Shown here in pieces: positions 36,846-57,979 of a stretch of 64,000 bases of DNA. This stretch comes from Tetramitus jugosus. Lineage: Eukaryota > Protista > Heterolobosea. The stretch spans positions 372,001-436,000 of the forward strand of contig OW569346.1 in NCBI GenBank assembly GCA_937625935.1, read 5' to 3'. Each line of letters starts with the position of its first letter. The first letter of the stretch is position 1. The position numbers and the translations under genes are program-made. The notes under the pieces are model-generated. The model searched no databases. It saw nothing but the letters and a program-made list of their open reading frames with translations, and was not told the origin of the DNA.

Positions 36846-37010
36846 TTCCCCTCGAAAGACGACGACCATAAATAATTTTGATTTTCTTTGACACAAGTAG
36901 TGAATTATTCTGTTGTATCATGACATTTGCTGTATCGTTTTAAAAGAGGGCAAGGAAAAAGAATGGACTTACAATGATTGTATTGTAGTTACTGCTATCT
37001 TCGGGACCAC

Positions 37011-38009
37011 TTTTTTTTTAATACAACCATTGCAGTTGCGCTTTTTATTGTCTTTCGTTTGCATTATCTGTACATTATTTCCCAATGAGGCTCGTAGAGC
37101 GTCATTGCTTCTGTTTCTCCTTGGTTGACGTGAACAGTTGATGGAGGGTCGTAAGACATCTCCGCTTCACACTGTTCACAAATGTTTTTGCTTTCTTGGC
37201 AGCCATTGACTTCTTCATTCCGTTAAGTACCAAGCCATCTTTTATCTGTTCGTTGGCATCTACTTCGATGCCCATCATTCCTTGCAGGTATTCTTTTCTG
37301 GTTTTTCTTATCGGTCTTCCATCAACCGCAAGTTGTCAAACCATATGTCGATGTGACTTTGTCGAGCCACCCCTAACTCCATTAACTCATCTCCTACTGT
37401 CTTCGCAAGTAATCTTCTGGCTTGGAAATTCCAGCTTTCGATCTACAACATGAGGGTACTTCAAGAAACCAAAGTCGGCTCCACTGTTATTTGCCTGCTT
37501 CTGTAACCACCATAGTTCGCGTGCATCCACTCTCACTATCCTCTCTTGATCGAGCAACGATTGTAGATGCTTTCCTTTGTGGAGCACGGGTTCAGTTTCA
37601 TCTACAGTCTTGATTTTGGAGGAGCATTAACAGTTCCTCATGGCCTAAATCATTATCAATAGCAGTTCATGTGATCTTGGTCATTCTGCACTTCGGAAAT
37701 ACACTTTTGGATTCTTTGAGACAAAAGGGTTTATCGTCAACCATCAATTGTTCGCGACTCGTGATGCCTGCCTTAAACAGCTTTTTGAGCAGGCTGGAGG
37801 GTACATACCTAGCTAAACAGCACTCATCACACTGTTGCTGTTGGGAATTGACTACAACCCTGATATGGAATTTGTGCAATCTGCTGGCGCCACTTGTGAA
37901 ATGATCCTTTGACTGCCTCTAGCCTGTTCCTTGACTTATATACATTCTCATATTGGAATGTTTGATTGTGCTTGATGTCCTCAAGCGTATCAAGGAACAG
38001 CTTTCTTGC
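37011..38009 (-). mobile_element. Older, decayed 5'-truncated non-LTR retrotransposon (copy B)
   Basis: Frameshifted homologue of the C-terminus of the 38158 ORF (EARKLFLDTLEDIKH; KYPHVVDRKLE; CLTTLHQLFTSTKEKQKQ*); poly(A) as T-run 37011-37019; CCHC region deleted; degenerate TSD TTCGGGACCAC at 37000-37010. Confidence 0.92.
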
Positions 38010-38024
38010 TTCCGGGTGGACCGC

Positions 38025-40727
38025 TTTTTTTTTTTTTTTTTTTTTAATACAACCATTTCGGTTGCTCACTTTATTCTCAATACATTTTCATCAGCCATCG
38101 CTCTTTGAGCGATGGCTCTTGGTCGTCTGATTAATTCCCAATGACGCTCGCAGAGCGTCATTGCTGTTGTTTCGCTTTTGTTGCGGTGAAGAGGTGAAGG
38201 AGAGTCGTGAGACATCTCCGTTTCACCCCATTCACAAAGGTTCTTGCTTTCTTACCGGCTTCTGTTGTTTTGATCCCAGTCGCTACCAGTCCGTTGGTGA
38301 CCTCTTCGGTGGCGTTTGTTTCTATGCCCATCATACCCTTCAGAAATTCTCTACTCGTCCGTCGCAAAGGACGCCTTTCCATCTTGCCATCCTTCAGTCG
38401 CACATTATCGAACCATATGTCGATACAGGACACACCCATGCTGGTAAGCTCCTTACTGACTGTCAAGGCTAGACATCTTCTTGCATACACAGCCCTTGAG
38501 CATCGAATAAGGCAGTGCAGCACACTTTCGGGTTCTTTGTTACACCAGACACACATCGAGGGCTCGGTGCCAGTGTTATAAAGACACCGAACAACTTCCT
38601 CCGTGTGGAGAGTACCACTTCTGACTTGAAGCTGGAACCATTCCAGCCTTCTGTCAACAACGTGTGGGTACTTGAGAAAGCTGAAGTCTGCGCCGCTGTA
38701 GTTGGCATCTTTTTGAATCCACCAACGCTCGCTCGTCTCTACACGTGCATTTCTCTCCTGATCAAACAGGGACTGCAGGTGTTCTCTACTCTCGACTCTG
38801 AGGTTACCCTTGTACAGAGCAGGTTCATTTTTAGTGGAGTTTTGGCTTATGGGACACTGACAGGTCCTCATTTGCGCCATCAAAATGTTCAGTATTTGGT
38901 GCGATTTTGCACCTATCCTACATTTTGGGAATAGTTTCTTGAATTCTTTGAAACAGATGGGATGTTCCTCTACAAGCAGTTGATTGCGGCTGACTATACC
39001 TGAGAGGTAGAGTTTTTTGAGGATGGTGGATGGTACGTACCTTGCCAATCTACACTCATCACACTGCGTAGTTGTACCTACAGTTAATCTGATCCCATGT
39101 GCATGCATCCTGATGGCACACCACTTGTGGTAAGTTGACACGACATACTCGAGTCTGTTGCTTGACTGAAATACATTCTCTTGTTGGAATGTTTGGTGGA
39201 GCTTGATGTCCTCAAGCGTGTCAAGGAACAGCCTACGAGCTTCAGTGTCTCTCTTACCGTTGATCATTGAGAACACAAACCATCCAGTCTGCGTCGCAAT
39301 TGTCTCTTCAATGTCCTTTAGTCCTACTGACCCGAGCTCAAAGCCGATGGACAGCAGCTCAGTCGGGAACCTCTTCATTGCCTTCGACCCGAACTTCACT
39401 AATGATCTTCCCAGTGCATTAACTTTGTTCAACCACTCAGCTGTCCAGTCAGTAAACTCTGATGCATAAGCGAATATAGGATGGATGCACGTGTTCACCA
39501 CCCGACTCACTTGTCTTGCGGTGAGTCTCATTACTTTGAGCCGAACAACCACCCTCTGTGCCTTTTGCCACGCTTGTTCTCTCTGTTTCTGGGTTGCACC
39601 CTTGAGATTCGTGTACAGACCCAGCGCACGAAACACCTGCCTGTTGTTTCTCCCCACCACCTTTGTGCCATCCACAGTAATGTCGTTCGATGACTTATTG
39701 TCCACTTTTCTGACGTAAAGTTCCAACTTGTCAGGATGCATTGTCATTCGGAGCCAACCCAAAGCGGTAGACATTGCTTTGGCGGCAATTTCAATGTCCT
39801 CCCTGGATTCAGCAAACAGATTACAGTCATCCACGTACGCAGCATTCCAGAGTCTCTGAGTCATCGCGCCAAATCCTTTCACTTGACTTTTCACATACAA
39901 CAAAACCACTTGGTGCACCAGTATGTAGGTAGTGGGTGATAGTGAATCACCCTGTCTCGTACCCTTTCCTATTCTAAACCTTCTCGAAAGCGAAGAGGTC
40001 AAGACTCGCGCATGATTGTCACGCACCATACCACTGACAAGTTTCACTATTCCCTCAGGAAAACCAAAGAATCTATATACAGCTTCTATAGCGTTGTGCG
40101 GGACCGAGTCGAAAGCCTTGGTAATGTCCGTCAACAAAAGGTACAATTGCTTGTCATGACGGTTGGCACAGTCAATGACACCCCTTATCAAGGACAGTTT
40201 CTCCCTGATATCTCGAAATTTTCGTCCTCCCCCTTGAACATTCGTAAACACACCTCCTTCCTCTGCCGCCTTCGAGATGCGTTGATTCAAAAGCTTAGTG
40301 TAAAGCTTAGACAACGAACTAAGAAGGCAAATAGGACGATAGTTCTCTGGTCGTGTGACGTCCCCTTTCTTGTAGGCAGGGATGATCACACACTCCTTCC
40401 ACGCTCTCGGGAACTTGCCGGTAGTAGTGATGTTGTTGAAGAAGTTGCAGAGAGTCTCTGCCAATTCCCACCTGAAGTCTCTTTTCTTGGTGCGAGGGAG
40501 TTTGACCATCTCGTTATGAACACCGTCAGCACCTGGGCACTTTCTGTTCCTTAACCATCTGATTGCTTCCGCGACTTCCTCTGTCTTGAAAGGTTGGATA
40601 GCTGTCCTCAGTTTGTGTTTATCGCTTCGACTATCCATCAGTGCAAGGAAGCCCATGCTAGCTTTATCCTTCTTGAATGCCTCTTCGTAATAGTCAGCTG
40701 CTACTTCACCAACTATATGAGGATCTG
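38025..40727 (-). mobile_element. Young 5'-truncated non-LTR retrotransposon, L1/Tx1-like (copy A)
   Basis: Poly(A) as 21-T run 38025-38045; perfect 15-bp TSD TTCCGGGTGGACCGC at 38010-38024 and 40728-40742; uninterrupted RT ORF. Confidence 0.97.
38158..40727 (-). CDS. Retrotransposon ORF2 fragment: reverse transcriptase plus C-terminal CCHC zinc knuckle; no N-terminal endonuclease present (5' truncation)
   Basis: KCPGADG, NYRPICLL, DITKAFDSV, GTRQGDSLSP, AYVDD, FRALG; CVWCNKEPESVLHCLIRC. Confidence 0.95.
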
Positions 40728-40781
40728 TTCCGGGTGGACCGCTTGCGCGGCAGACGTCCAATTTTGTTGATTTTACAAGGA

Positions 40782-40827
40782 GCATTGATGGTGTAGAGGC
40801 AGCATCTCAGCCTTCCTGGGCGGATGC
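40782..40827 (+). pseudogene. tRNA-Gly(TCC)-like remnant with internal deletion
   Basis: GCATTGA-TG-GTGTAGAGGCAGCAT-C-TCAGC-CTTCC gives acceptor 5' strand, D-arm with A box, and anticodon TCC; followed by TGGGCGGATGC resembling a T-stem/acceptor 3' strand; B box absent. Confidence 0.7.
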
Positions 40828-40854
40828 TTATTGTATCAAGTTTGGCAAACGGAT

Positions 40855-42064
40855 TTATTCATTGCCCTCGAGCATTCTGCACATTTTGTATGCCATTTCG
40901 TATGCATAAAAGGTCACCGCATTCACAGGGAACGCTCTGAGAACAGTTGGAGTGAATCCTCTGTACAAGTCTCGCACGGTATAAGTCTTGAACATTTTTC
41001 TCAAATTCAAGTTTCGATCATTACGAACAATGCTCTGTGCACAGTCGGTCGGATACACCAATGCCCACGCACCTGTACCAGCGATTCCACCTGCCATCAA
41101 CAGAGAGAGAGCATCCTGTTCATATGATCTTCCCAATCGATTCACATAAAAGTCAGCAAACTGTCTCTTTGACATTTCATAAATGTAAAAGTATGCAGCA
41201 TAGAATGTGAGCTGATGGGAGAGACAAGCAGCATAGCCATGAAAAAATCCATTGGTCTTCCACAAGTGCTTCACACAGTTGCTAAAGCTTTGCTTGGAAA
41301 CCATCGTCTCATTGCCCGTTGCTGTCTGTAACTGAATTTTAATCATGTCAGCAGGAGCTACGACCAAGCTAATGGCCAATCCAGCAAACGCACCAGACAA
41401 ACCAATGACAAGGGACTCCTTCCTGGCAGAATAGTTTTCTCCCATGACTTTTTGAGAGTAGCTGTTCATCCATTCCTTGCAAACACCAAAGCTTCCAAAC
41501 AAGACAAAGTTGGATGCCAATTCACCCAGTAGGGGAGCGAGCATTCCCTTGTACAGACCTCTAAAATACTCTGTTCTTGTGGTGAATGTTGAATTGAATT
41601 GAGCAGTGTTGCCTTGCAATGTTTGAATTCTTGTCTTGATTGTATCAATTGGGTAGCCAAGGGTGATTCCCGCCAGACCGCCTGCTGATCCACTGTAAAT
41701 GAACAAGAAAGAGAGTTAGAGATCACCGCGGTGGAGGGGAGCACAGAGCGAACAGCAACTTTCCAATTCGTCGGAAACTGTAATACCGATCGGAGTAATT
41801 GAAAGACAGTCTGCATCACTCACAAGCTCAAACAACAACAAGAGAAAGGAGTGAAGAACGGTACCTGATAAATTCTGAGAAAACACTAAAGTTTGACCGA
41901 TGATTGTCACTGTCTAAAGTTGCATTATTGTTGTCATGGTTGTTGTGTTGATCCTTTGCTTGTTGTTGGGCACTCGGTATTGCGTTCGTCTTGCTCATGA
42001 GTTGGTGTTGTGATTGGTGATGATGATGGGCTGTGGTGGTGGTTGTGTAGTTGCTGTTGGACAT
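40855..42064 (-). CDS. Mitochondrial carrier (carnitine/basic amino acid, SLC25A20/29/45-like); intron 41693-41864
   Basis: YPIDTIKTRIQ, GLYKGMLAPL, APADMIKIQLQ, LRAFPVNAVTF; spliced EFIS|GSAGG. Confidence 0.9.
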
Positions 42065-42414
42065 TATTTTCGGTGTGGTGATCGTGTTGTTGTTTTCTCT
42101 TGGACAATAATTTATCAGAGATAGAATATTTGTGTGTGAAAGGTGGGCAGAAGAACCACGGATGAGAGAATCTTTGTTCTTCGATTGCCAATTCCACCAT
42201 CGTCTCTTGGTATAATTGGAAAATTCTTCGCCACACAATGTCTCCTGCTTGACATTGGTTGACTTTCCGCGAAAGAAAAAGCGCTTCGATGCGGGAAGGG
42301 GTTTCCAGCAAAGATTTCCCACAAAAAATGGTGATATCTTTTCTTTTGTTGCTTCTGCACCCAAATTGTTTTACAAAAAATAGTGTCGAACAGCTTAAAA
42401 CCGTTGTTGTCCGA

Positions 42415-42628
42415 CGACACTGGTCGTGTTACAATTTGTCTGATGTCTGGGGGCGTTATGCCCTCAGCATTCTATTACCCCCAGTGTCTCACTCGTTGAA
42501 CTTCACCTGGTCAGGAGGTAGTGAATGAATCGGACATGTCGCATGAAGCATGTGACACAATAGCGAAGCTTGCTTCAAAGAACTGTGCTTGTATGAATGT
42601 TCTATTCAGACAAATTGGCACAGTGTCG
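42415..42628. ncRNA. Candidate structured non-coding RNA or inverted-repeat element, identity unknown
   Basis: CGACACTG/CAGTGTCG and CAATTTGTCTGA/TCAGACAAATTG close a region containing several hairpins. Confidence 0.4.
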
Positions 42629-42648
42629 AAGGGCAACCATATTATTTA

Positions 42649-44676
42649 TTATAAGCCACTGTGAAGGAAGGGCTGAACATCAAAACTTGTAATCTGAGGA
42701 TCACTCATTATATCCTTGAGTGTATGTTCACTCGATAGATGTTGGAGACGAATGTAGCTCGTTTCATCGAGTGGAACAATTGGAACACCAGAGTTGAGAA
42801 GATTCAGCTCTTCCTGAAGTTTCATTAATAACTCTGTGTTCCCTTGAGATTGTTCTTCTCTCAGTTGATTGATATGCAGGAAGAGAGCTTTCACATACAG
42901 GGTGGGATCGTTGTCTCTAACATGCTTCTTTAGAAGTGATATCCATAGGCGCCATATAAAAGAGGAATTGCCTTGAGAGAGCAAGGATTTGTACAAGTGA
43001 TACACTGCCCTCCGCCACAGTGTAGAATTCCTTTTTGTCATGCCAGATAATCGAATGCCAACGATAGCGTGACATTCAAACCTTATCTGACTGGTTGTTG
43101 CGATGAACAAATAAACTGACGGATTAAATGTACCCCTGTTTTTCATCGCTTGAATCTGATTCAGCTGACGCAATACTGTTAGATAGAGTGATATTGGTGT
43201 GCTCTGCTGCAAATTGCATGACACATGTGACCTTTTTGCACCCAAAAGGGCATTGTCAAATTCATTTACCTGAGGAGCGGATGGTAAAATTGTGGAGAAC
43301 TCGACATTTCCAATTTCACCTAACACTGATGATGTAATCTCAAATAAAGCTGGATATTGTTGATGAAATAGAGCCATGCAGTGATAAAACTGAGCGCTAG
43401 GATCAATTGTGGGACAAAATTGCAAAACAAGAGATGAGTACTCGAGTAATCGCTCCCACTGTTTTGATCTGGCAGACACATTTATCCCCACTGATCTTAA
43501 TTCGTTTAAAGAGAAGTGTCTGACACCGTTCTTACGTTGGTAGTAATCGTAAAATCGGTCAGATATATCATTAATATCGAGTGATTCCTCATCTCCATTT
43601 GTATTATCAAATATAGCTTGCCCCTTCCGTATAGATAAGTATGTGAAGAGCAATAGGCGATCATAAGCCAATATCTTCGAAAATCCAGCATTGTTATCAT
43701 CTCGCATCAAGTTTATGAGCGACAATTTGGAAGTCAGTTTCCTCATCTTCATTCTGCTGTATTGTACAGTGTGACTATTTGCGTTCGTTAACATAAACTG
43801 TTGCATTGCAATCACAATATTCCACTTGGCATATTCCAAATTTTCTCTTTCCTCTTGTTTGAATAGATGTTGTTCAAACTTGCGATTCAAAACAACAGTG
43901 ACAACATAAAATTCACACATCTTGCTCCACACTCGCCAAACTGATTGTTGATCACTCAGATGAAAGCATTGTGAGATACACAGATTGAACTGCTCGACAA
44001 CATTGCACGCCATCTGTCCATCATCACCATTTTCACTCTGGGTATCATTTAACAACACAACATCATCACCGCCAGTATAAAACTCAAAATTGATCTTTGC
44101 CATCAAATACCACAACTTGCTCTCTAACACTACAAATAAATCATCATGTTCATCACCATCACGTTTCTGATCCAAGCGACTAATCTCTCGTAAAATCGAT
44201 TTACAAAGCAGGAAACACTGCACGTACTCTCTCACTTTCCACAGTAACTTTGCCATGCCATACTGCAGCATCATTGATTGATAGACGATTGAAAATAGGT
44301 CACTACTGCTCTCAAAAGCAATTTTGGCGTCATCATCGCGAGTCGACTCATGATTTCTTCTTGATGCTTGCGACTGTTTCTGTTGTTGAATCGATGCGAG
44401 TAGCTTGGACTGAATATGAGAGAACAGTTGAGCTACGGTCGATGATCGGTTAATGTGACAAGCACTCGAAACAAACAAGTCAATCAATGGCAAATGAAAC
44501 GCTTCATGCACTTCAAACTGTTCTAATAAGCGATCAAACACAATGTCGTACTGGTTGTTGGACGAGTAGGGAACAAGAACATCCAAGTACAACAAGTCTA
44601 ATTCTTCCTTTGAAAAGTGTCGTTTGTTGAGGTCATGCTGCTTGACTTGTTGTTCCTGCTGCTTTTGTCGAAACAT
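42649..44676 (-). CDS. Hypothetical alpha-helical (TPR-like?) protein
   Basis: ~675-aa ORF, no confident motif. Confidence 0.65.
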   Translation of the reverse strand: MFRQKQQEQQVKQHDLNKRHFSKEELDLLYLDVLVPYSSNNQYDIVFDRLLEQFEVHEAFHLPLIDLFVSSACHINRSSTVAQLFSHIQSKLLASIQQQKQSQASRRNHESTRDDDAKIAFESSSDLFSIVYQSMMLQYGMAKLLWKVREYVQCFLLCKSILREISRLDQKRDGDEHDDLFVVLESKLWYLMAKINFEFYTGGDDVVLLNDTQSENGDDGQMACNVVEQFNLCISQCFHLSDQQSVWRVWSKMCEFYVVTVVLNRKFEQHLFKQEERENLEYAKWNIVIAMQQFMLTNANSHTVQYSRMKMRKLTSKLSLINLMRDDNNAGFSKILAYDRLLLFTYLSIRKGQAIFDNTNGDEESLDINDISDRFYDYYQRKNGVRHFSLNELRSVGINVSARSKQWERLLEYSSLVLQFCPTIDPSAQFYHCMALFHQQYPALFEITSSVLGEIGNVEFSTILPSAPQVNEFDNALLGAKRSHVSCNLQQSTPISLYLTVLRQLNQIQAMKNRGTFNPSVYLFIATTSQIRFECHAIVGIRLSGMTKRNSTLWRRAVYHLYKSLLSQGNSSFIWRLWISLLKKHVRDNDPTLYVKALFLHINQLREEQSQGNTELLMKLQEELNLLNSGVPIVPLDETSYIRLQHLSSEHTLKDIMSDPQITSFDVQPFLHSGL

Positions 44677-45054
44677 GTTATTTCCCAGCCGAAAAGTCCG
44701 AAGTTTTTCGCGCCACAATTTGACTCGCCCAGTTGTAAATCAGAATAAAAATTGATTGTAATCGAATTGTCTCTTTCGGAACTTTGCACACGTCACACAC
44801 AAAAAGCTCTTTGTTTGTTTTCGAAGAAATTTGATCAACACATTTTACGTACATCTATTCCCATACACACATATTATCTGTATCATCTCTATATACGCAC
44901 GCACACATATTGATATTGTAAATATACCCATACATCAATATCATCATCATATCCATCCAAACAAAACATTATCTATATATCTAAAAAAGTTATTATAGCT
45001 CAATTCGACAACAACTGTACATATATACAAACAACACAATACTAGAAGAAGAAA

Positions 45055-46224
45055 ATGCAAAGAAAAAGAACTCGTTCCCACCCACAAAAGTACAAGAAGC
45101 ACAAGACCAACACTGTTGACTTTTTTGTCTTGAGAGAAGCATTGAGAGATCAAGAGCAGCCTGCTGCATTTGAAAAGCCACTGGTTTCTGTCGACTTGGA
45201 CAAGTTGGTCAAGCCAGACGACAAGTTTGGCAAAGATGTTTTTGATCAATTGATGGACATGGCAAGGAGTGGAAAAAAGTTTGTTGATTTTAGCAATACA
45301 CTGAATCTGAGCGAAAGAATGCGTGTTCATGCAATTGCAGAGCAATTTGGTGTCGAGCATTTCTCAAGAGGAAGCAATCCGTTTAGGTACATTTGTGCTC
45401 TGCCAAGAAGTGGACCACGTGACAACAATTTCCAATACTTTGGATACATTGGACTGTTTGGAAACATTGTTGACACAATTGCAAACAAGTACATTTCTGA
45501 TGCTGTTCCACAGGAGCACAGACTGAAGCGTATTAAGCGTGATGGTCCACCACATCACATTACATTGATGACAAGACCTGAGATTCAAACTGCATTGAAG
45601 AGCATGGAAGAAAAGTTCCCAGAATTGATGAAGCAGTCTGTTCCACAGGATGAAGGCGTAAGACCAAAGGAAGACGAGAGTGGACTAAAGACTGATTTGC
45701 AAAAGTTGCTCAAGCTTGTTTCAGAGCATGTCAAGGGCGATTTGGAGCCATTGGGACTGGGCAAGATTGAAGGAGCTGACGAAGATGCTGACAATGAGTG
45801 CTTCTTTGTGGTGTTGAACTGGCCAAGTGCCAGCAAGTTTAGAAACTTGTTGGGATTGGAGCCATACGACTTCCACATTACATTGGCATTCAAGAGTGGA
45901 GACATTCACAACAGCAGCCAGAGAAAGAACAAGAGTGCTTTGATGGACCCTCAGCAGGCGCCATTGGAAAAGCCACTCTACGTCGAAGAATTGGCCAAGA
46001 TGAGTCACTTTTTGTCTCATTTGAACGTTGACCCAAAACATGCTCATAGTTTTGTGAGCTTGGGTTGGGTGTGCCCTCAAGTGTTGGTCAAGAGTGAGTT
46101 GACCGCGTTGGACATGGGAGATGTTGGTCTGAGTGAGAACGACAAGCTCATCATTTCCAACTGGATGAAAGACGGAACAAACAACTTGAAAACTTGGCAA
46201 GAGTCATATGCTCAAGGCAAGTAA
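45055..46224 (+). CDS. R3H domain + 2H phosphoesterase, possible C-terminal SAM-like domain
   Basis: ERMRVHAIAEQFGVEHFSRG (R3H); two HxT motifs HHITL and DFHITLAF. Confidence 0.82.
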   Translation: MQRKRTRSHPQKYKKHKTNTVDFFVLREALRDQEQPAAFEKPLVSVDLDKLVKPDDKFGKDVFDQLMDMARSGKKFVDFSNTLNLSERMRVHAIAEQFGVEHFSRGSNPFRYICALPRSGPRDNNFQYFGYIGLFGNIVDTIANKYISDAVPQEHRLKRIKRDGPPHHITLMTRPEIQTALKSMEEKFPELMKQSVPQDEGVRPKEDESGLKTDLQKLLKLVSEHVKGDLEPLGLGKIEGADEDADNECFFVVLNWPSASKFRNLLGLEPYDFHITLAFKSGDIHNSSQRKNKSALMDPQQAPLEKPLYVEELAKMSHFLSHLNVDPKHAHSFVSLGWVCPQVLVKSELTALDMGDVGLSENDKLIISNWMKDGTNNLKTWQESYAQGK

Positions 46225-46559
46225 TTGGTCGCAAGAATGATTACTTGACTCATGGCTATCCTCAGCCCTATTTGTGAAATATATAATAACAAAAATAAAA
46301 AAAATGTGTGTAAACTCTGGTTGCTGTTGTTCTTGTCATTGGATACAGGGTGGAGATTTTGCTTCATTTTCTTGATGTCAAGCGTGTGTGTTGAATGACT
46401 TTTATTGTAGATTCCTCATGAGCTCAAAACCAGTTTCGATTCTTATTTCACGCCAGAAACGCAGTGTCCCATGAGCGCAGGTTCCGCAGTGGTGTTGATG
46501 AAGTCTCGTGCGAGAATTGAAGTGTGTCTTGGAAAACAAGCAAGCTAACCAACACGAAT

Positions 46560-47789
46560 ATGACTGCTCAGCCACCACAATTATACGTTGTCACAGGAGG
46601 AAATGGATTTCTTGGCTCTCATGTCGTGAATCAAATTTTGAACGCTGAGAAAAGACCCGCCAAAATTGCCATCTTTGATCTACAGGCCGACAATGTGTTT
46701 CTCAACTCAGCAGAAGATGATGGATCTGCAGGGTCGTTATGGAAGCAAAGAGAATCTAGCATTCAATTTTACAAGACAGATGTGACCAATCGAACTGAGT
46801 TGATGAACAACTTAAAGTCGTTCCTTGGTTCGGGCAATGCAACCGACCAACCAGAGCTAACAGTGTTTCACACGGCCAGTCTTGTGAGCTTATGGATCGA
46901 TTATCATGTGATCCATAGAGTCAACGTCACAGGAACAGAGATTTTAGTGGACAGCTTGTGCGAGTTATTGGACTCCAAGCTTGTAAACAAAGTAAAATTC
47001 ATCTACACGAGCTCCAACACGGTACAAATGGAGTTTGGTAGCTTCGAGAAGAGCCCAACTAGTGGTCATAGGGAAAGTTTTATCGATAGTGAAGATGGTT
47101 CAAGACAGTACACTTATCCTGAAAGTGCCTCATCGTCCTACATTGCTACAAAGAGGTTAGCTGAGAAGTACATTTTAAGCAAGAATGGATCTTGTCAAGG
47201 AAAGCTATTGACTTGCTCTGTAAGACCATCTGGTGTCATTTATGGGCCCGACTCCACAGTTCACAAGCAAATGGTTCTCTCGTACAAGAAGAATCATGTG
47301 AAAGTGGGTGGTGCTACAGATGATTTCAACATTTCTTATGTTGAGAATGTTGCTTATGCTCATGTCTTGTGCAGCCAGCATATGAACGATTCAAGTGACA
47401 AACCATGCGGTCGTGCATACTTTGTGGGAGACTCCAAGGGTCATTACTATAATTTCTTTGTGCCTCTTTATGAGAGTATTGGACTTAAGAATCCAAGTTT
47501 GTTGGATTATCGCATTTTGTTAATCTTAGGTTACATTGCATGTTTCGTTTGCATGTTAGTGAATCTTGTGCTGCCAAAGAAAATGGCATGGAGGCCATTT
47601 ACTGTACCTATTGAGATTGAAATGATCATCTACCCATTTTATTGTTCTCATCAGAGTGCCACAGAGGATTTCGGTTACAAGCCAATTGTCAGTGAAAAGG
47701 AAGCAATTCAAAGAACGGTTCAAAACTTTATTGCATGGAACAAGAAGTTAGAATCTGGTGTCGATACTAAGGATCGGAAAATACTTTGA
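46560..47789 (+). CDS. 3-beta-hydroxysteroid dehydrogenase/NSDHL-like extended SDR
   Basis: TGGNGFLG, VFHTAS, VNVTGT, YTSS, YIATK, YVENVAYAH. Confidence 0.88.
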   Translation: MTAQPPQLYVVTGGNGFLGSHVVNQILNAEKRPAKIAIFDLQADNVFLNSAEDDGSAGSLWKQRESSIQFYKTDVTNRTELMNNLKSFLGSGNATDQPELTVFHTASLVSLWIDYHVIHRVNVTGTEILVDSLCELLDSKLVNKVKFIYTSSNTVQMEFGSFEKSPTSGHRESFIDSEDGSRQYTYPESASSSYIATKRLAEKYILSKNGSCQGKLLTCSVRPSGVIYGPDSTVHKQMVLSYKKNHVKVGGATDDFNISYVENVAYAHVLCSQHMNDSSDKPCGRAYFVGDSKGHYYNFFVPLYESIGLKNPSLLDYRILLILGYIACFVCMLVNLVLPKKMAWRPFTVPIEIEMIIYPFYCSHQSATEDFGYKPIVSEKEAIQRTVQNFIAWNKKLESGVDTKDRKIL

Positions 47790-48045
47790 GAAGCTCCAAC
47801 TGTCCTTTCGATGAATGCCCAACTGAGTACGCGAGTACCCTTCAAATAAAATAATACTTTCCCTGATTTCTTGACTTCATCGTAGCGAGTGTGCTGTCTA
47901 GATCCGATGTTGTGGTGTTGTCACACTGTGGTTCGTCTGAACTATCCCCGAACAACCAGCCGCTACTTGACACCTGTCAAAAAAATCTGGCTGAAAAATC
48001 AAAAGAAGCCACCAACACAACAAAACAAAAAACACGCGAACAGAT

Positions 48046-50247
48046 ATGAGCTCAGATTTACCATCCATGTTGCCATCTCCCAATGAGCAACTCTACTTGG
48101 ATCTAATGAGAATGTACACCAAGAGTATCATGAGTGACGTTACGCTTATTGTTCACAATAGTAACAATTTCGATCATGCTGACACCAATAACAACAATAA
48201 TCCACAACAGCAGCAACAGCAGCAGGCAGAGTCATCATCTGTTTCTTTTGCTTGTCATCGTTGTGTTTTGAGTGCGCGATGTGATTTTTTCTGTAAAATG
48301 TTCAATGGCGAAAATGAAAATGGCGCCAATTGGGCGGAGAGCGAGAGCGCTGTGGTTCACTTGACTGATATCGAGCCAGAGGACTTTAGAGTGTTGATCG
48401 AGTATTTCTATTCGGCAAAGATTAATGTGGATGCGAGCAATGCGTTTGGTGTGCTAAAGTTGGCAGATGAGTTTGGTGTTGAGCTCGTGAAACAGTATTG
48501 TGTACAATATGTGAAGAACTTGGTGACTCATGAGAATGTGTTTGATGTGCTAGAGCAGTCCATGTATCATAATTTTGAAGAATTGTATCAATTTTGTCTT
48601 TCGCATGTCGCTGTCCATGCAAAGCAGTTGTTCATGGATGGAGATCCTTCTCATTTTTGTCGCATGGACAAGATGGCAATGATGGAGGTGCTCAGGGATG
48701 ATCGTATCATGGCGCCAGAGATTGTATTGTTCTTGTCTGTGATCCAATGGGGAAAGTATCAAGTCAAATTGGCCAACAATAATCGAATTACGATGGGAGA
48801 CAACTATCAGAACAACAGGAAGAAGAAACAAGAGCTTTCAAAGAGATTAGTGCTAAGAAAGAAGCAAAGACCAACGCAGGAGATATCGATGGATTCATTG
48901 AGCGGCATGCCAACAATTTCCACATCTTCACCATGGACAGAAGGTTCAGGCTCAGTGTCTATTGGTGTAGATCGTGCGCAATATCGAGATGTAGCCCAAT
49001 TACCAATTGTGAGGAGGAGTGAATATGAGCCAATAGCGAACGGTGATTTCGACAATAGAAATGATAATAGTAACGGTAGGAGCAATCAACAGTTTGCTGA
49101 TGCAAGTAGCGGAGGGAGACAATCTCAAACTGCATCTTCAAGTCATGGAACATCGCAAATGGAGAGAGCATTGTCACCATCTGAGTTACATGTGACAACT
49201 ATTTTGAGTCGTTCACCAGCCAGCAATTCTAGATCCTCTAAGAAATCACGACGTAGGGCTCAGAGCGACATTAATGATCCTCATATACTGAGTATATCAG
49301 AGGCGAGTGAGTTTGACCACACAGCATCTGAGATGACAGACTTGAGCATCTATGATGAAGAAGAAGGAGACTTATCACCGCGAGATTCATTAACCACTGA
49401 AGATAACGGAGGTTGGGCGCCAGTGGACAGCGCTTGTCCGAGACATCTATCTAATCTACTGAACTTGACGATCATGAGTTCCTCCAGTATTATTGAGCCA
49501 TTGTCTCACTCATCTTTGCCGACAGCGTTCCATCCACCTGATATGTCACAAATCAAGAAAACATATAGTCAAATCATCGATTATGTTCAAGACAAATCAT
49601 TTGTCAAGCAATTGAGTGTAGTGGTGGCTGACTTGATGGATCTTGTTCGGTTCCCTACATTGGATCCGCATGAACTCTATGAATATGTTGAACCTAGTCT
49701 TGTTGTGCCTAAGATGATGCTTCTAGAAGCATACAGAGCTCATGCACTCTCCAATCGAATACACTCTCCTAGCAAGTCTCCCAGAGCAAAGGTGAGAGAT
49801 GGAAGTCTATTTTATAGGCCTGGTGTCCTAGAAAACGTACCAATCAAAATACTCAAGGGTTGGACCTGTATTTATCAACAGCCATATTCTCATGCCACCA
49901 CTGCTTCCATCTTTGAGCCTGCTACGAGTGGAACCAGAATAATGCTGGCAGCAAGACACAAGAATAGTAGTAGATTGGCACTTTGCGCAATGGGAAGGGT
50001 CTCTGTGGTACTGAGAGAAACGAAGGAGAATGAAACTACATATGAGAATGGTGTTTACTTTTACAATTGGAAGGGTCGTTCAGTCGGTTTCAGTGCTGAC
50101 AGTAACATTAATCTGGGAACAGCAGATTTGTCGAGCGGCTTGGAAAAGCTATCGTGGCATTTGACAGGACGTGGAGGTTACAGATGTGGAGAGTTGACCA
50201 AGTTGAACGACAGCACAGAATGGGAGAAGCTCGTGTTCTTCAGCTAA
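48046..50247 (+). CDS. BTB/BACK protein with an uncharacterised aromatic C-terminal domain
   Basis: SDVTL...CHRCVLSARCDFF; EIVLFLSVIQW; LVRFPTL; C-terminal SWHL..GGYRCG. Confidence 0.85.
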   Translation: MSSDLPSMLPSPNEQLYLDLMRMYTKSIMSDVTLIVHNSNNFDHADTNNNNNPQQQQQQQAESSSVSFACHRCVLSARCDFFCKMFNGENENGANWAESESAVVHLTDIEPEDFRVLIEYFYSAKINVDASNAFGVLKLADEFGVELVKQYCVQYVKNLVTHENVFDVLEQSMYHNFEELYQFCLSHVAVHAKQLFMDGDPSHFCRMDKMAMMEVLRDDRIMAPEIVLFLSVIQWGKYQVKLANNNRITMGDNYQNNRKKKQELSKRLVLRKKQRPTQEISMDSLSGMPTISTSSPWTEGSGSVSIGVDRAQYRDVAQLPIVRRSEYEPIANGDFDNRNDNSNGRSNQQFADASSGGRQSQTASSSHGTSQMERALSPSELHVTTILSRSPASNSRSSKKSRRRAQSDINDPHILSISEASEFDHTASEMTDLSIYDEEEGDLSPRDSLTTEDNGGWAPVDSACPRHLSNLLNLTIMSSSSIIEPLSHSSLPTAFHPPDMSQIKKTYSQIIDYVQDKSFVKQLSVVVADLMDLVRFPTLDPHELYEYVEPSLVVPKMMLLEAYRAHALSNRIHSPSKSPRAKVRDGSLFYRPGVLENVPIKILKGWTCIYQQPYSHATTASIFEPATSGTRIMLAARHKNSSRLALCAMGRVSVVLRETKENETTYENGVYFYNWKGRSVGFSADSNINLGTADLSSGLEKLSWHLTGRGGYRCGELTKLNDSTEWEKLVFFS

Positions 50248-50263
50248 ACGGTTTTGCAATAAA

Positions 50264-50336
50264 AGGCTCCTACGAGACTCGAACTCGTGACCTCTGTCTT
50301 ACTAGGACAGCGCACTGCCACCTGTGCTAAGGAGCC
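50264..50336 (-). tRNA. tRNA-Thr(AGT)
   Basis: GGCTCCTTAGCACAGGTGGCAGTGCGCTGTCCTAGTAAGACAGAGGTCACGAGTTCGAGTCTCGTAGGAGCCT folds as a cloverleaf, followed by a T-run. Confidence 0.97.
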
Positions 50337-50391
50337 GTTGTATTCAGTTTCTCCTTATATTTTCCTAAAGTCAATCTAAAAAATTTCGTTT

Positions 50392-50714
50392 CAATAAGCG
50401 GAGGAAAACAAGCAAGGAATACATGCTTGGCATGTTGGGTATTGAAACAAGGGCGCTGAAACAAGTGATCAAAGGACTGACGAAGAGTGGGATGGAGAAG
50501 AAGAAGGCAATTGTGAAGGCCCAACAATTTGTCGATCATACAAAGAGGAGGTGTGGAGGTGATGCGACGCCTCTTCACGAGTTCAAAGGAGATTGCTGGT
50601 TGCTAATGCTCTACGAGCATTTGCAACTACTTAAATCAATAGTGACGGCATTCTGCCGTCACGAAACTGATACAGAGAATCAACAAAGAAGTAAAATACA
50701 ACCAAAAAAAAAAA
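50392..50714 (+). mobile_element. Short 3' fragment of a related non-LTR retrotransposon (copy C)
   Basis: KTSKEYMLGMLGIETRALKQVIKGLTKSG..AQQFVDHTKRRC aligns with copy A RTSREFLKGMMGIETNATEEVTNGLVATG..ARTFVNGVKRRC; poly(A) 50704-50714; TSD TA(A/C)AAAATTTCGTTT at 50377-50391 and 50715-50729. Confidence 0.9.
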
Positions 50715-50889
50715 TACAAAATTTCGTTTGATTGTATTCAAGTTTCGATGGTTGAGTATTTCGTGGATTTGCTCTTTCGATTCTTCGCTGCACGGTTAAC
50801 TCATGTCAAGTGTGAAACACAACCAATTTCCTGCTGGCGAACAAACAAACAAACAAAAAAAAACAAACAAACAAACAACATTTCACATC

Positions 50890-57908: not shown

Positions 57909-57979
57909 TGCATCTGCCGGGATTCGAACCCGGGTCGCAGCGATGGCAACGCTGCATGATACCCCTACACTACAGATGC
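57909..57979 (-). tRNA. tRNA-Gly(GCC)
   Basis: GCATCTGTAGTGTAGGGGTATCATGCAGCGTTGCCATCGCTGCGACCCGGGTTCGAATCCCGGCAGATGCA followed by TTTT. Confidence 0.97.

Follow-up and report, generated by a model that had tools for sequence, protein, structure and literature searches.

Long interspersed nuclear elements (LINEs) that insert at a fixed position upstream of genes that RNA polymerase III (Pol III) transcribes were previously known only from dictyostelid social amoebae. TRE5 elements insert 44-54 bp upstream of tRNA genes, in the opposite orientation, and also target 5S rRNA genes; the protein encoded by the first open reading frame of TRE5-A (ORF1p) binds TBP, Brf1 and Bdp1, and targeting is lost when the B box is mutated (PMC5911963). 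Spaller et al. (2016; PMC5006619) state that no TRE-like elements turned up in Physarum, Acanthamoeba or Protostelium, that it is unknown where the TRE ancestor came from, and that targeting to about -50 has more than one origin within Dictyostelia (TRE5 and NLTR-B). Here, we describe a LINE family from the heterolobosean protist Tetramitus jugosus (GCA_937625935.1; 26.35 Mb in 56 contigs) that is found head-to-head with, and at a set distance upstream of, tRNA and 5S rRNA genes. The family was recognised in a 64,000-nucleotide stretch of contig OW569346.1 (positions 372,001-436,000, hereafter the window), in which three copies, A, B and C, lie upstream of two tRNA genes or gene remnants, and was then surveyed across the genome. 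A literature search returned no such LINE family outside Dictyostelia and nothing relevant for Naegleria or Heterolobosea together with retrotransposons and tRNA, in keeping with the suggestion of a first-pass annotation of the window that the family may be undescribed.

Copy A lies on the minus strand with its poly(A) tail at 38025-38046, read as poly(T) on the plus strand, and a body at 38047-40727 that is 5'-truncated, so that ORF1 and the endonuclease are absent. The body consists of a 3' untranslated region (UTR; 38047-38157), with two hairpins and AATAAA, and a remnant of the second open reading frame (ORF2; 38158-40727) holding the reverse transcriptase (RT) and C-terminal domains; its frame of 875 codons begins within ORF2 and carries an RVT_1 domain (E 1.9e-26). 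At the DNA level copy A is 98-99.9% identical to other copies, and those copies extend past the position equivalent to 40728. It is bounded by identical 15-bp target-site duplications, the distal one at 38010-38024 and the tRNA-proximal one at 40728-40742, followed by a 39-bp spacer that leads to a tRNA-like start at 40782, 54 bp from the 5' end of the element.

Copy C, on the plus strand at 50392-50714, is heavily 5'-truncated (body 50392-50703, poly(A) 50704-50714) and comprises the last ~75 codons of ORF2, homologous to the C-terminus of copy A, with the 3' UTR and poly(A). Its target is tRNA-Thr(AGU) on the minus strand (50264-50336; called by ARAGORN, 61.2 bits in Rfam), whose +1 is 40 bp from the tRNA-proximal duplication (50377-50391) and 55 bp from the 5' end of the element; the distal duplication (50715-50729) matches the proximal one at 14 of 15 positions. 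For both copies the coordinates and distances given by the first-pass annotation proved exact. The DNA of copy C shares 99% identity with another subfamily's 3' end (L017) and 95% with L058. Its poly(A) starts within the conserved terminal hairpin (50690-50714), the 3' half of which is gone, and the rest of the subfamily retains the whole hairpin.

The gene beside copy A, on the plus strand at 40782-40816, had been taken for a tRNA-Gly-like gene. The tRNA-Gly start holds, as this segment is an exact match to the first 35 nt, up to the anticodon, of a tRNA-Gly(UCC) family with 9 genomic copies (8 of them in other places); a complete gene does not. Neither ARAGORN nor Rfam (E up to 10) makes a call there, what follows the anticodon is found only in the window, and a metagenome contig that matches as far as 40816 continues with a canonical T-arm and tRNA 3' half. 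Because of the exact family match, the unique downstream sequence and the canonical 3' half in that contig, we read the window copy, by sequence comparison, as a 3'-truncated remnant of the Pol III gene targeted by copies B and A.

Copy B (37012-38009, minus strand) adjoins the rear of copy A and belongs to a sister subfamily, the third in the window. It was delimited from its tblastn layout, a 3'-terminal hairpin and poly(T) at 37012-37020, and is likewise 5'-truncated, retaining the C-terminus of ORF2 (approximately residues 909-1274) and the 3' UTR. Copy B is the older of the two and was displaced outward when copy A inserted. The flank preceding its poly(T) ends in nearly the same bases as the duplication of copy A, which suggests that one and the same bond, 39 bp from the tRNA, was nicked in two separate events. 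For comparison, the site upstream of tRNA-Gly(GCC) on the minus strand (57909-57979; ARAGORN and Rfam) is empty, and the remaining intergenic spaces of the window hold no copies of the family. The window stretch is also present in groundwater, soil and freshwater metagenomes; no empty-site allele of copy A was seen over 37000-41500 in the contigs of four metagenome runs, which, being contigs only, are not evidence of its absence.

Using the copy A ORF as an RT query, 57 genome matches were retained from 508 first-look candidates and merged into approximately 48 elements, and the upstream DNA of 39 elements was examined for Pol III genes identified with ARAGORN and Rfam. A Pol III gene lies on the 5' side of 34 of the 39 elements, and each of the 34 is head-to-head with it, so that copies are not mostly away from tRNA genes or in random orientation, and the position-specific, orientation-fixed targeting put forward from the two window copies extends genome-wide. 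The 34 target genes are 31 tRNA genes, one intron-bearing tRNA gene, one tRNA remnant and one 5S rRNA gene, with the tRNAs spanning ~20 anticodon types. Two 5S rRNA genes in the same orientation, 1.2 kb apart (L022:99-218 and 1333-1452; C46), each have a head-to-head copy upstream, with the duplication at one of them at offsets 35-50; the genomic 5S genes act as repeated targets. At least seven co-oriented copies of different subfamilies are arrayed over 12 kb upstream of a single tRNA-Phe, and co-oriented stacks are found likewise at seven further loci. Repeated insertion thus builds co-oriented stacks of up to 12 kb, with newer copies in front of older ones. Chance is excluded as the source of this pattern by the 34 of 34 head-to-head arrangements together with 27 duplications that fall within a 15-20 bp wide window.

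The tRNA gene was also considered as a part of the element itself and rejected, as the duplications exclude the tRNA and ~20 anticodon types and 5S genes are involved. The tRNA calls themselves gave several side observations. The intron-bearing tRNA (104 nt; L052:834-937, C35) is found by Rfam and missed by ARAGORN, and ARAGORN reports odd four-base anticodons for two long tRNAs (C20:74199 and C45:337703); tRNA counts made with ARAGORN alone are therefore too low in this genome. Contigs C54 and C56 have identical tRNA positions and scores, and look like one tRNA-rich, organelle-like sequence assembled twice.

Target-site duplications of 9-19 bp were delimited for 27 insertions. In most clades of the family the duplication runs from 38-45 to 49-57 bp upstream of +1, whereas in clade IV (C14, C10b, C6, C26 and C35) it runs from 28-33 to 43-47 bp; the two sets do not overlap, and C29 (clade V) is intermediate, at 33-47 bp. 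As the clade IV offsets do not overlap those of the other clades, the ruler differs by about one helical turn (~10 bp) between sister lineages. The gap between the end of the RT match and the gene is 34-55 bp in 5'-truncated copies and 2333-2696 bp in full-length copies, where it is made up of the element's own 5' part. The poly(A) end of the element abuts the distal duplication, which places the first-strand (primer) nick at the gene-proximal edge, ~40 bp upstream of the first mature base (~30 bp in clade IV), and the second nick lies 11-19 bp further out. Target genes are left intact, except for the truncated remnant beside copy A.

Full-length elements with both ORF1 and an apurinic/apyrimidinic (AP) endonuclease were recovered and are ~5.2 kb long. 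At their 5' end a stretch of 7-30 A residues, variable in length, leads within a few bases to the ATG of ORF1, which lies ~10 nt in from the terminus (e.g., L058:218-230), leaving practically no 5' UTR. ORF1 encodes 345-463 amino acids, of which the first ~220 are conserved, and has no Pfam match and no relative in the protein atlas searched. The conserved part is modelled (predicted local distance difference test score, pLDDT, 82) as two RNA recognition motif (RRM) folds followed by a long helix, taken as a coiled coil, with tandem-RRM proteins as the best structural matches; the remainder is variable and basic, and probably disordered. ORF2 (1274-1317 amino acids) has an ATG of its own, placed 7 nt ahead of the ORF1 stop codon in the -1 frame, and contains Exo_endo_phos (AP endonuclease) and RVT_1 (RT) domains, the endonuclease being closest to L1-EN among solved structures. 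Beyond these are a CX2C pair, a CX2CX8HX4C (CCHC) motif and a tail of ~120 residues that is conserved and family-specific, is modelled with pLDDT >90 and has no PDB match. No RNase_H match was found in four ORFs (E up to 0.1), and the C-terminal model has no RNase H fold. The 3' UTR (95-175 nt) consists of a hairpin, AATAAA and an invariant terminal hairpin, and leads into poly(A); the first hairpin has 8 base pairs with compensatory changes between subfamilies. An AP endonuclease at the N-terminus, RT, poly(A), 5' truncation to varying extents and target-site duplications mark the family as AP endonuclease (APE)-type LINEs.

An RT tree groups 23 copies in a single clade (SH-aLRT 100, stem 0.87) with at least five subclades, and none of the 31 closest outside sequences falls inside it. 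The family was recently active, since terminal branches are 0.001-0.02, several ORF1-ORF2 pairs are intact and copies are 98-99.9% identical. A profile of six ORF2s searched against 1.84 billion representatives gave, as the only close outside matches, short fragments of 47-97% identity. Those that were traced come from one ENA metagenome assembly (ERZ23579034; L063-L065) and one fragmented NCBI assembly (GCA_037189345.1; L062), and the diverged members in these assemblies are 47-73% identical to the nearest subfamily of this genome, a sequence resemblance which suggests that related hosts carry the family. The next-nearest proteins outside the family are only 23-31% identical, the few named ones being from arthropods and a fish, and none of 20 outside RT matches that were looked up is from a dictyostelid. 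The contigs of the nearest outside relatives and of the diverged metagenome members, which are short or wholly within elements, contain no tRNA. The host genome is gene-dense, and the window, with a G+C content of ~42% and long uninterrupted ORFs, encodes CFAP65/CFAP74-type flagellar proteins; the host is therefore not a dictyostelid, as had been proposed from the window.

The origin of the family can be read in two ways. It may be a distant true relative of the dictyostelid TRE5/TRE3 elements, through common ancestry or horizontal transfer, with targeting that was not invented independently. The shared insertion geometry, duplication size, 5S targeting, two-ORF layout with a -1 frame and APE-RT-zinc order agree with such kinship (PMC5911963), as does the stated uncertainty over where the TRE ancestor came from (PMC5006619). 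We nevertheless consider kinship rather doubtful, given the low identity of the best matches outside the family and their arthropod and fish names, the isolation of the clade on its long stem, a virtual lack of 5' UTR and of A/B/C-type UTR modules, the flagellar genes of the host, and the precedent within Dictyostelia of more than one rise of -50 targeting. Our tentative proposal is that a LINE lineage in a non-amoebozoan protist evolved Pol III-guided integration at approximately -50 on its own; the lineage's shift in nick position, missing 5' UTR and ORF2 C-terminal domain are not described for TRE5.

As to mechanism, it is highly probable that this AP-endonuclease LINE family uses target-primed reverse transcription to insert at a position set relative to Pol III genes. 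By analogy with TRE5-A, a protein of the element would be tethered to the pre-initiation complex of Pol III that sits upstream of the gene (a TFIIIB-like assembly of TBP, Brf1 and Bdp1, or Pol III itself), and the tether would hold the ORF2 endonuclease at a constant distance and in one polarity. Candidates for the tether are ORF1p, with its predicted tandem RRM, coiled coil and variable disordered tail, and the ~120-residue C-terminal domain of ORF2, which may act instead of, or together with, ORF1p. RT would probably recognise the element's own 3' UTR hairpins, and the result would be safe-harbour insertion in a gene-dense genome. Sequence independence, fixed polarity, the like treatment of tRNA and 5S genes and the reuse of the same bond all favour a protein, not a DNA motif, as the landmark. 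TFIIIB, with Pol III, is what tRNA and 5S genes have in common upstream of +1, and since 5S genes are targeted alike, the cue would be this shared machinery and not tRNA sequence.

Several points weigh against this reading. Contact with TFIIIB is drawn by analogy, and the scored set comprises 63 tRNAs and 57 of the 508 RT candidates. Furthermore, five of the 39 elements have no visible Pol III gene; all five are in stacks that extend beyond the DNA examined, and for that reason their targets are unseen rather than absent.

In a rival reading, the endonuclease or ribonucleoprotein (RNP) recognises a feature of the DNA, such as a motif, a bend or the edge of the nucleosome-free region upstream of Pol III genes, with no contact to TFIIIB or Pol III. 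The 35 tRNA upstream regions compared share only a weak W-rich (A or T) position at -25/-26 and an A at -1 (27 of 35), both possible upstream promoter features of the organism, and many duplications start with A residues, as an L1-like nick preference predicts. Against these stand the lack of any motif from -40 to -60 in the same regions, where the maximum is 0.34 bit per position and the nicks fall; target sequences that span GC-rich and AT-rich DNA, the 5' ends of older copies among them; and 5S genes, whose different upstream sequence is targeted at the same distance. The target sequences of copies A and C had already been noted as unrelated, and local target sequence is irrelevant to insertion across the family. 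As fixed polarity and precision to a few base pairs are also better fit by a positioned protein complex, we judge a DNA feature to be an improbable guide. Random insertion followed by selection that purged all but harmless copies near tRNA genes, although selection against genic insertions should be strong in a gene-dense genome, can be set aside almost entirely, for it cannot yield a single orientation in 34 of 34 elements, a 15-bp landing window or clade-specific offsets, and it leaves unexplained the same nick reused by two events and the other intergenic spaces of the window without copies.

Given the near absence of a 5' UTR, the W-rich position at -25/-26, a possible TBP site, would lie ~25 bp before the first base of the element in most clades (~20 bp in clade IV) and could be a borrowed divergent promoter. 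The family adds a second host lineage with many intact young subfamilies, the same geometry, 5S targeting and a 10-bp shift between clades, and its -30 and -40 sister clades are a natural series for mapping the molecular ruler. With it, one can compare directly how the Pol III pre-initiation complex is read by RNPs that use target-primed reverse transcription, and ask whether compact genomes predictably lead to safe-harbour targeting. The family is also a source of new protein modules for inserting DNA at set positions regardless of sequence, and is relevant to the annotation of this genome, as stacks of these elements appear to flank most tRNA loci (63 tRNAs scored).

Among described systems, R1, R2 and Utopia are likewise LINEs that use multicopy RNA genes as safe targets, but they cut at a fixed sequence inside the gene and disrupt it, whereas this family enters unrelated upstream sequences and leaves the gene intact. 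Keno and Mutsu, of Tx1 type, are further LINEs with sequence-specific cleavage within multicopy RNA genes. Ty3 and Ty1 of Saccharomyces cerevisiae and DGLT-A of Dictyostelium resemble the family in taking the Pol III machinery (TFIIIB or AC40) as a safe-harbour landmark; they differ in being long terminal repeat (LTR) elements with an integrase and no target-primed reverse transcription, with Ty3 inserting at the start site and Ty1 up to ~1 kb away. NLTR-B of Polysphondylium (Heterostelium) pallidum is closer, being a non-LTR element that occurs 39-64 bp upstream of tRNA genes, but has RNase H after the RT and three ORFs, in contrast to the CCHC motif and undetected RNase H of this family; it shows that a preference for -50 can arise outside the TRE lineage.

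The nearest counterpart is TRE5, compared here from its published descriptions. The 5' ends of the elements described here are 49-57 bp away from +1, or 43-47 bp in clade IV, head-to-head in all 34 cases, and the upstream regions of 5S rRNA genes are targeted as well. Both have ORF1 and ORF2 with a -1 frame and the APE-RT-zinc motif order, and TRE5 too has duplications of ~12-16 bp, copies clustered at tRNA genes and a poly(A) tail. The differences are that the modular UTRs of TRE5 (A+B at the 5' end, B+C at the 3' end) do not occur in this family, that its host has flagellar genes and is not a dictyostelid, and that one of its clades inserts ~10 bp nearer the gene. In distance, orientation, 5S targeting, stacking and ORF layout, the family works like TRE5.

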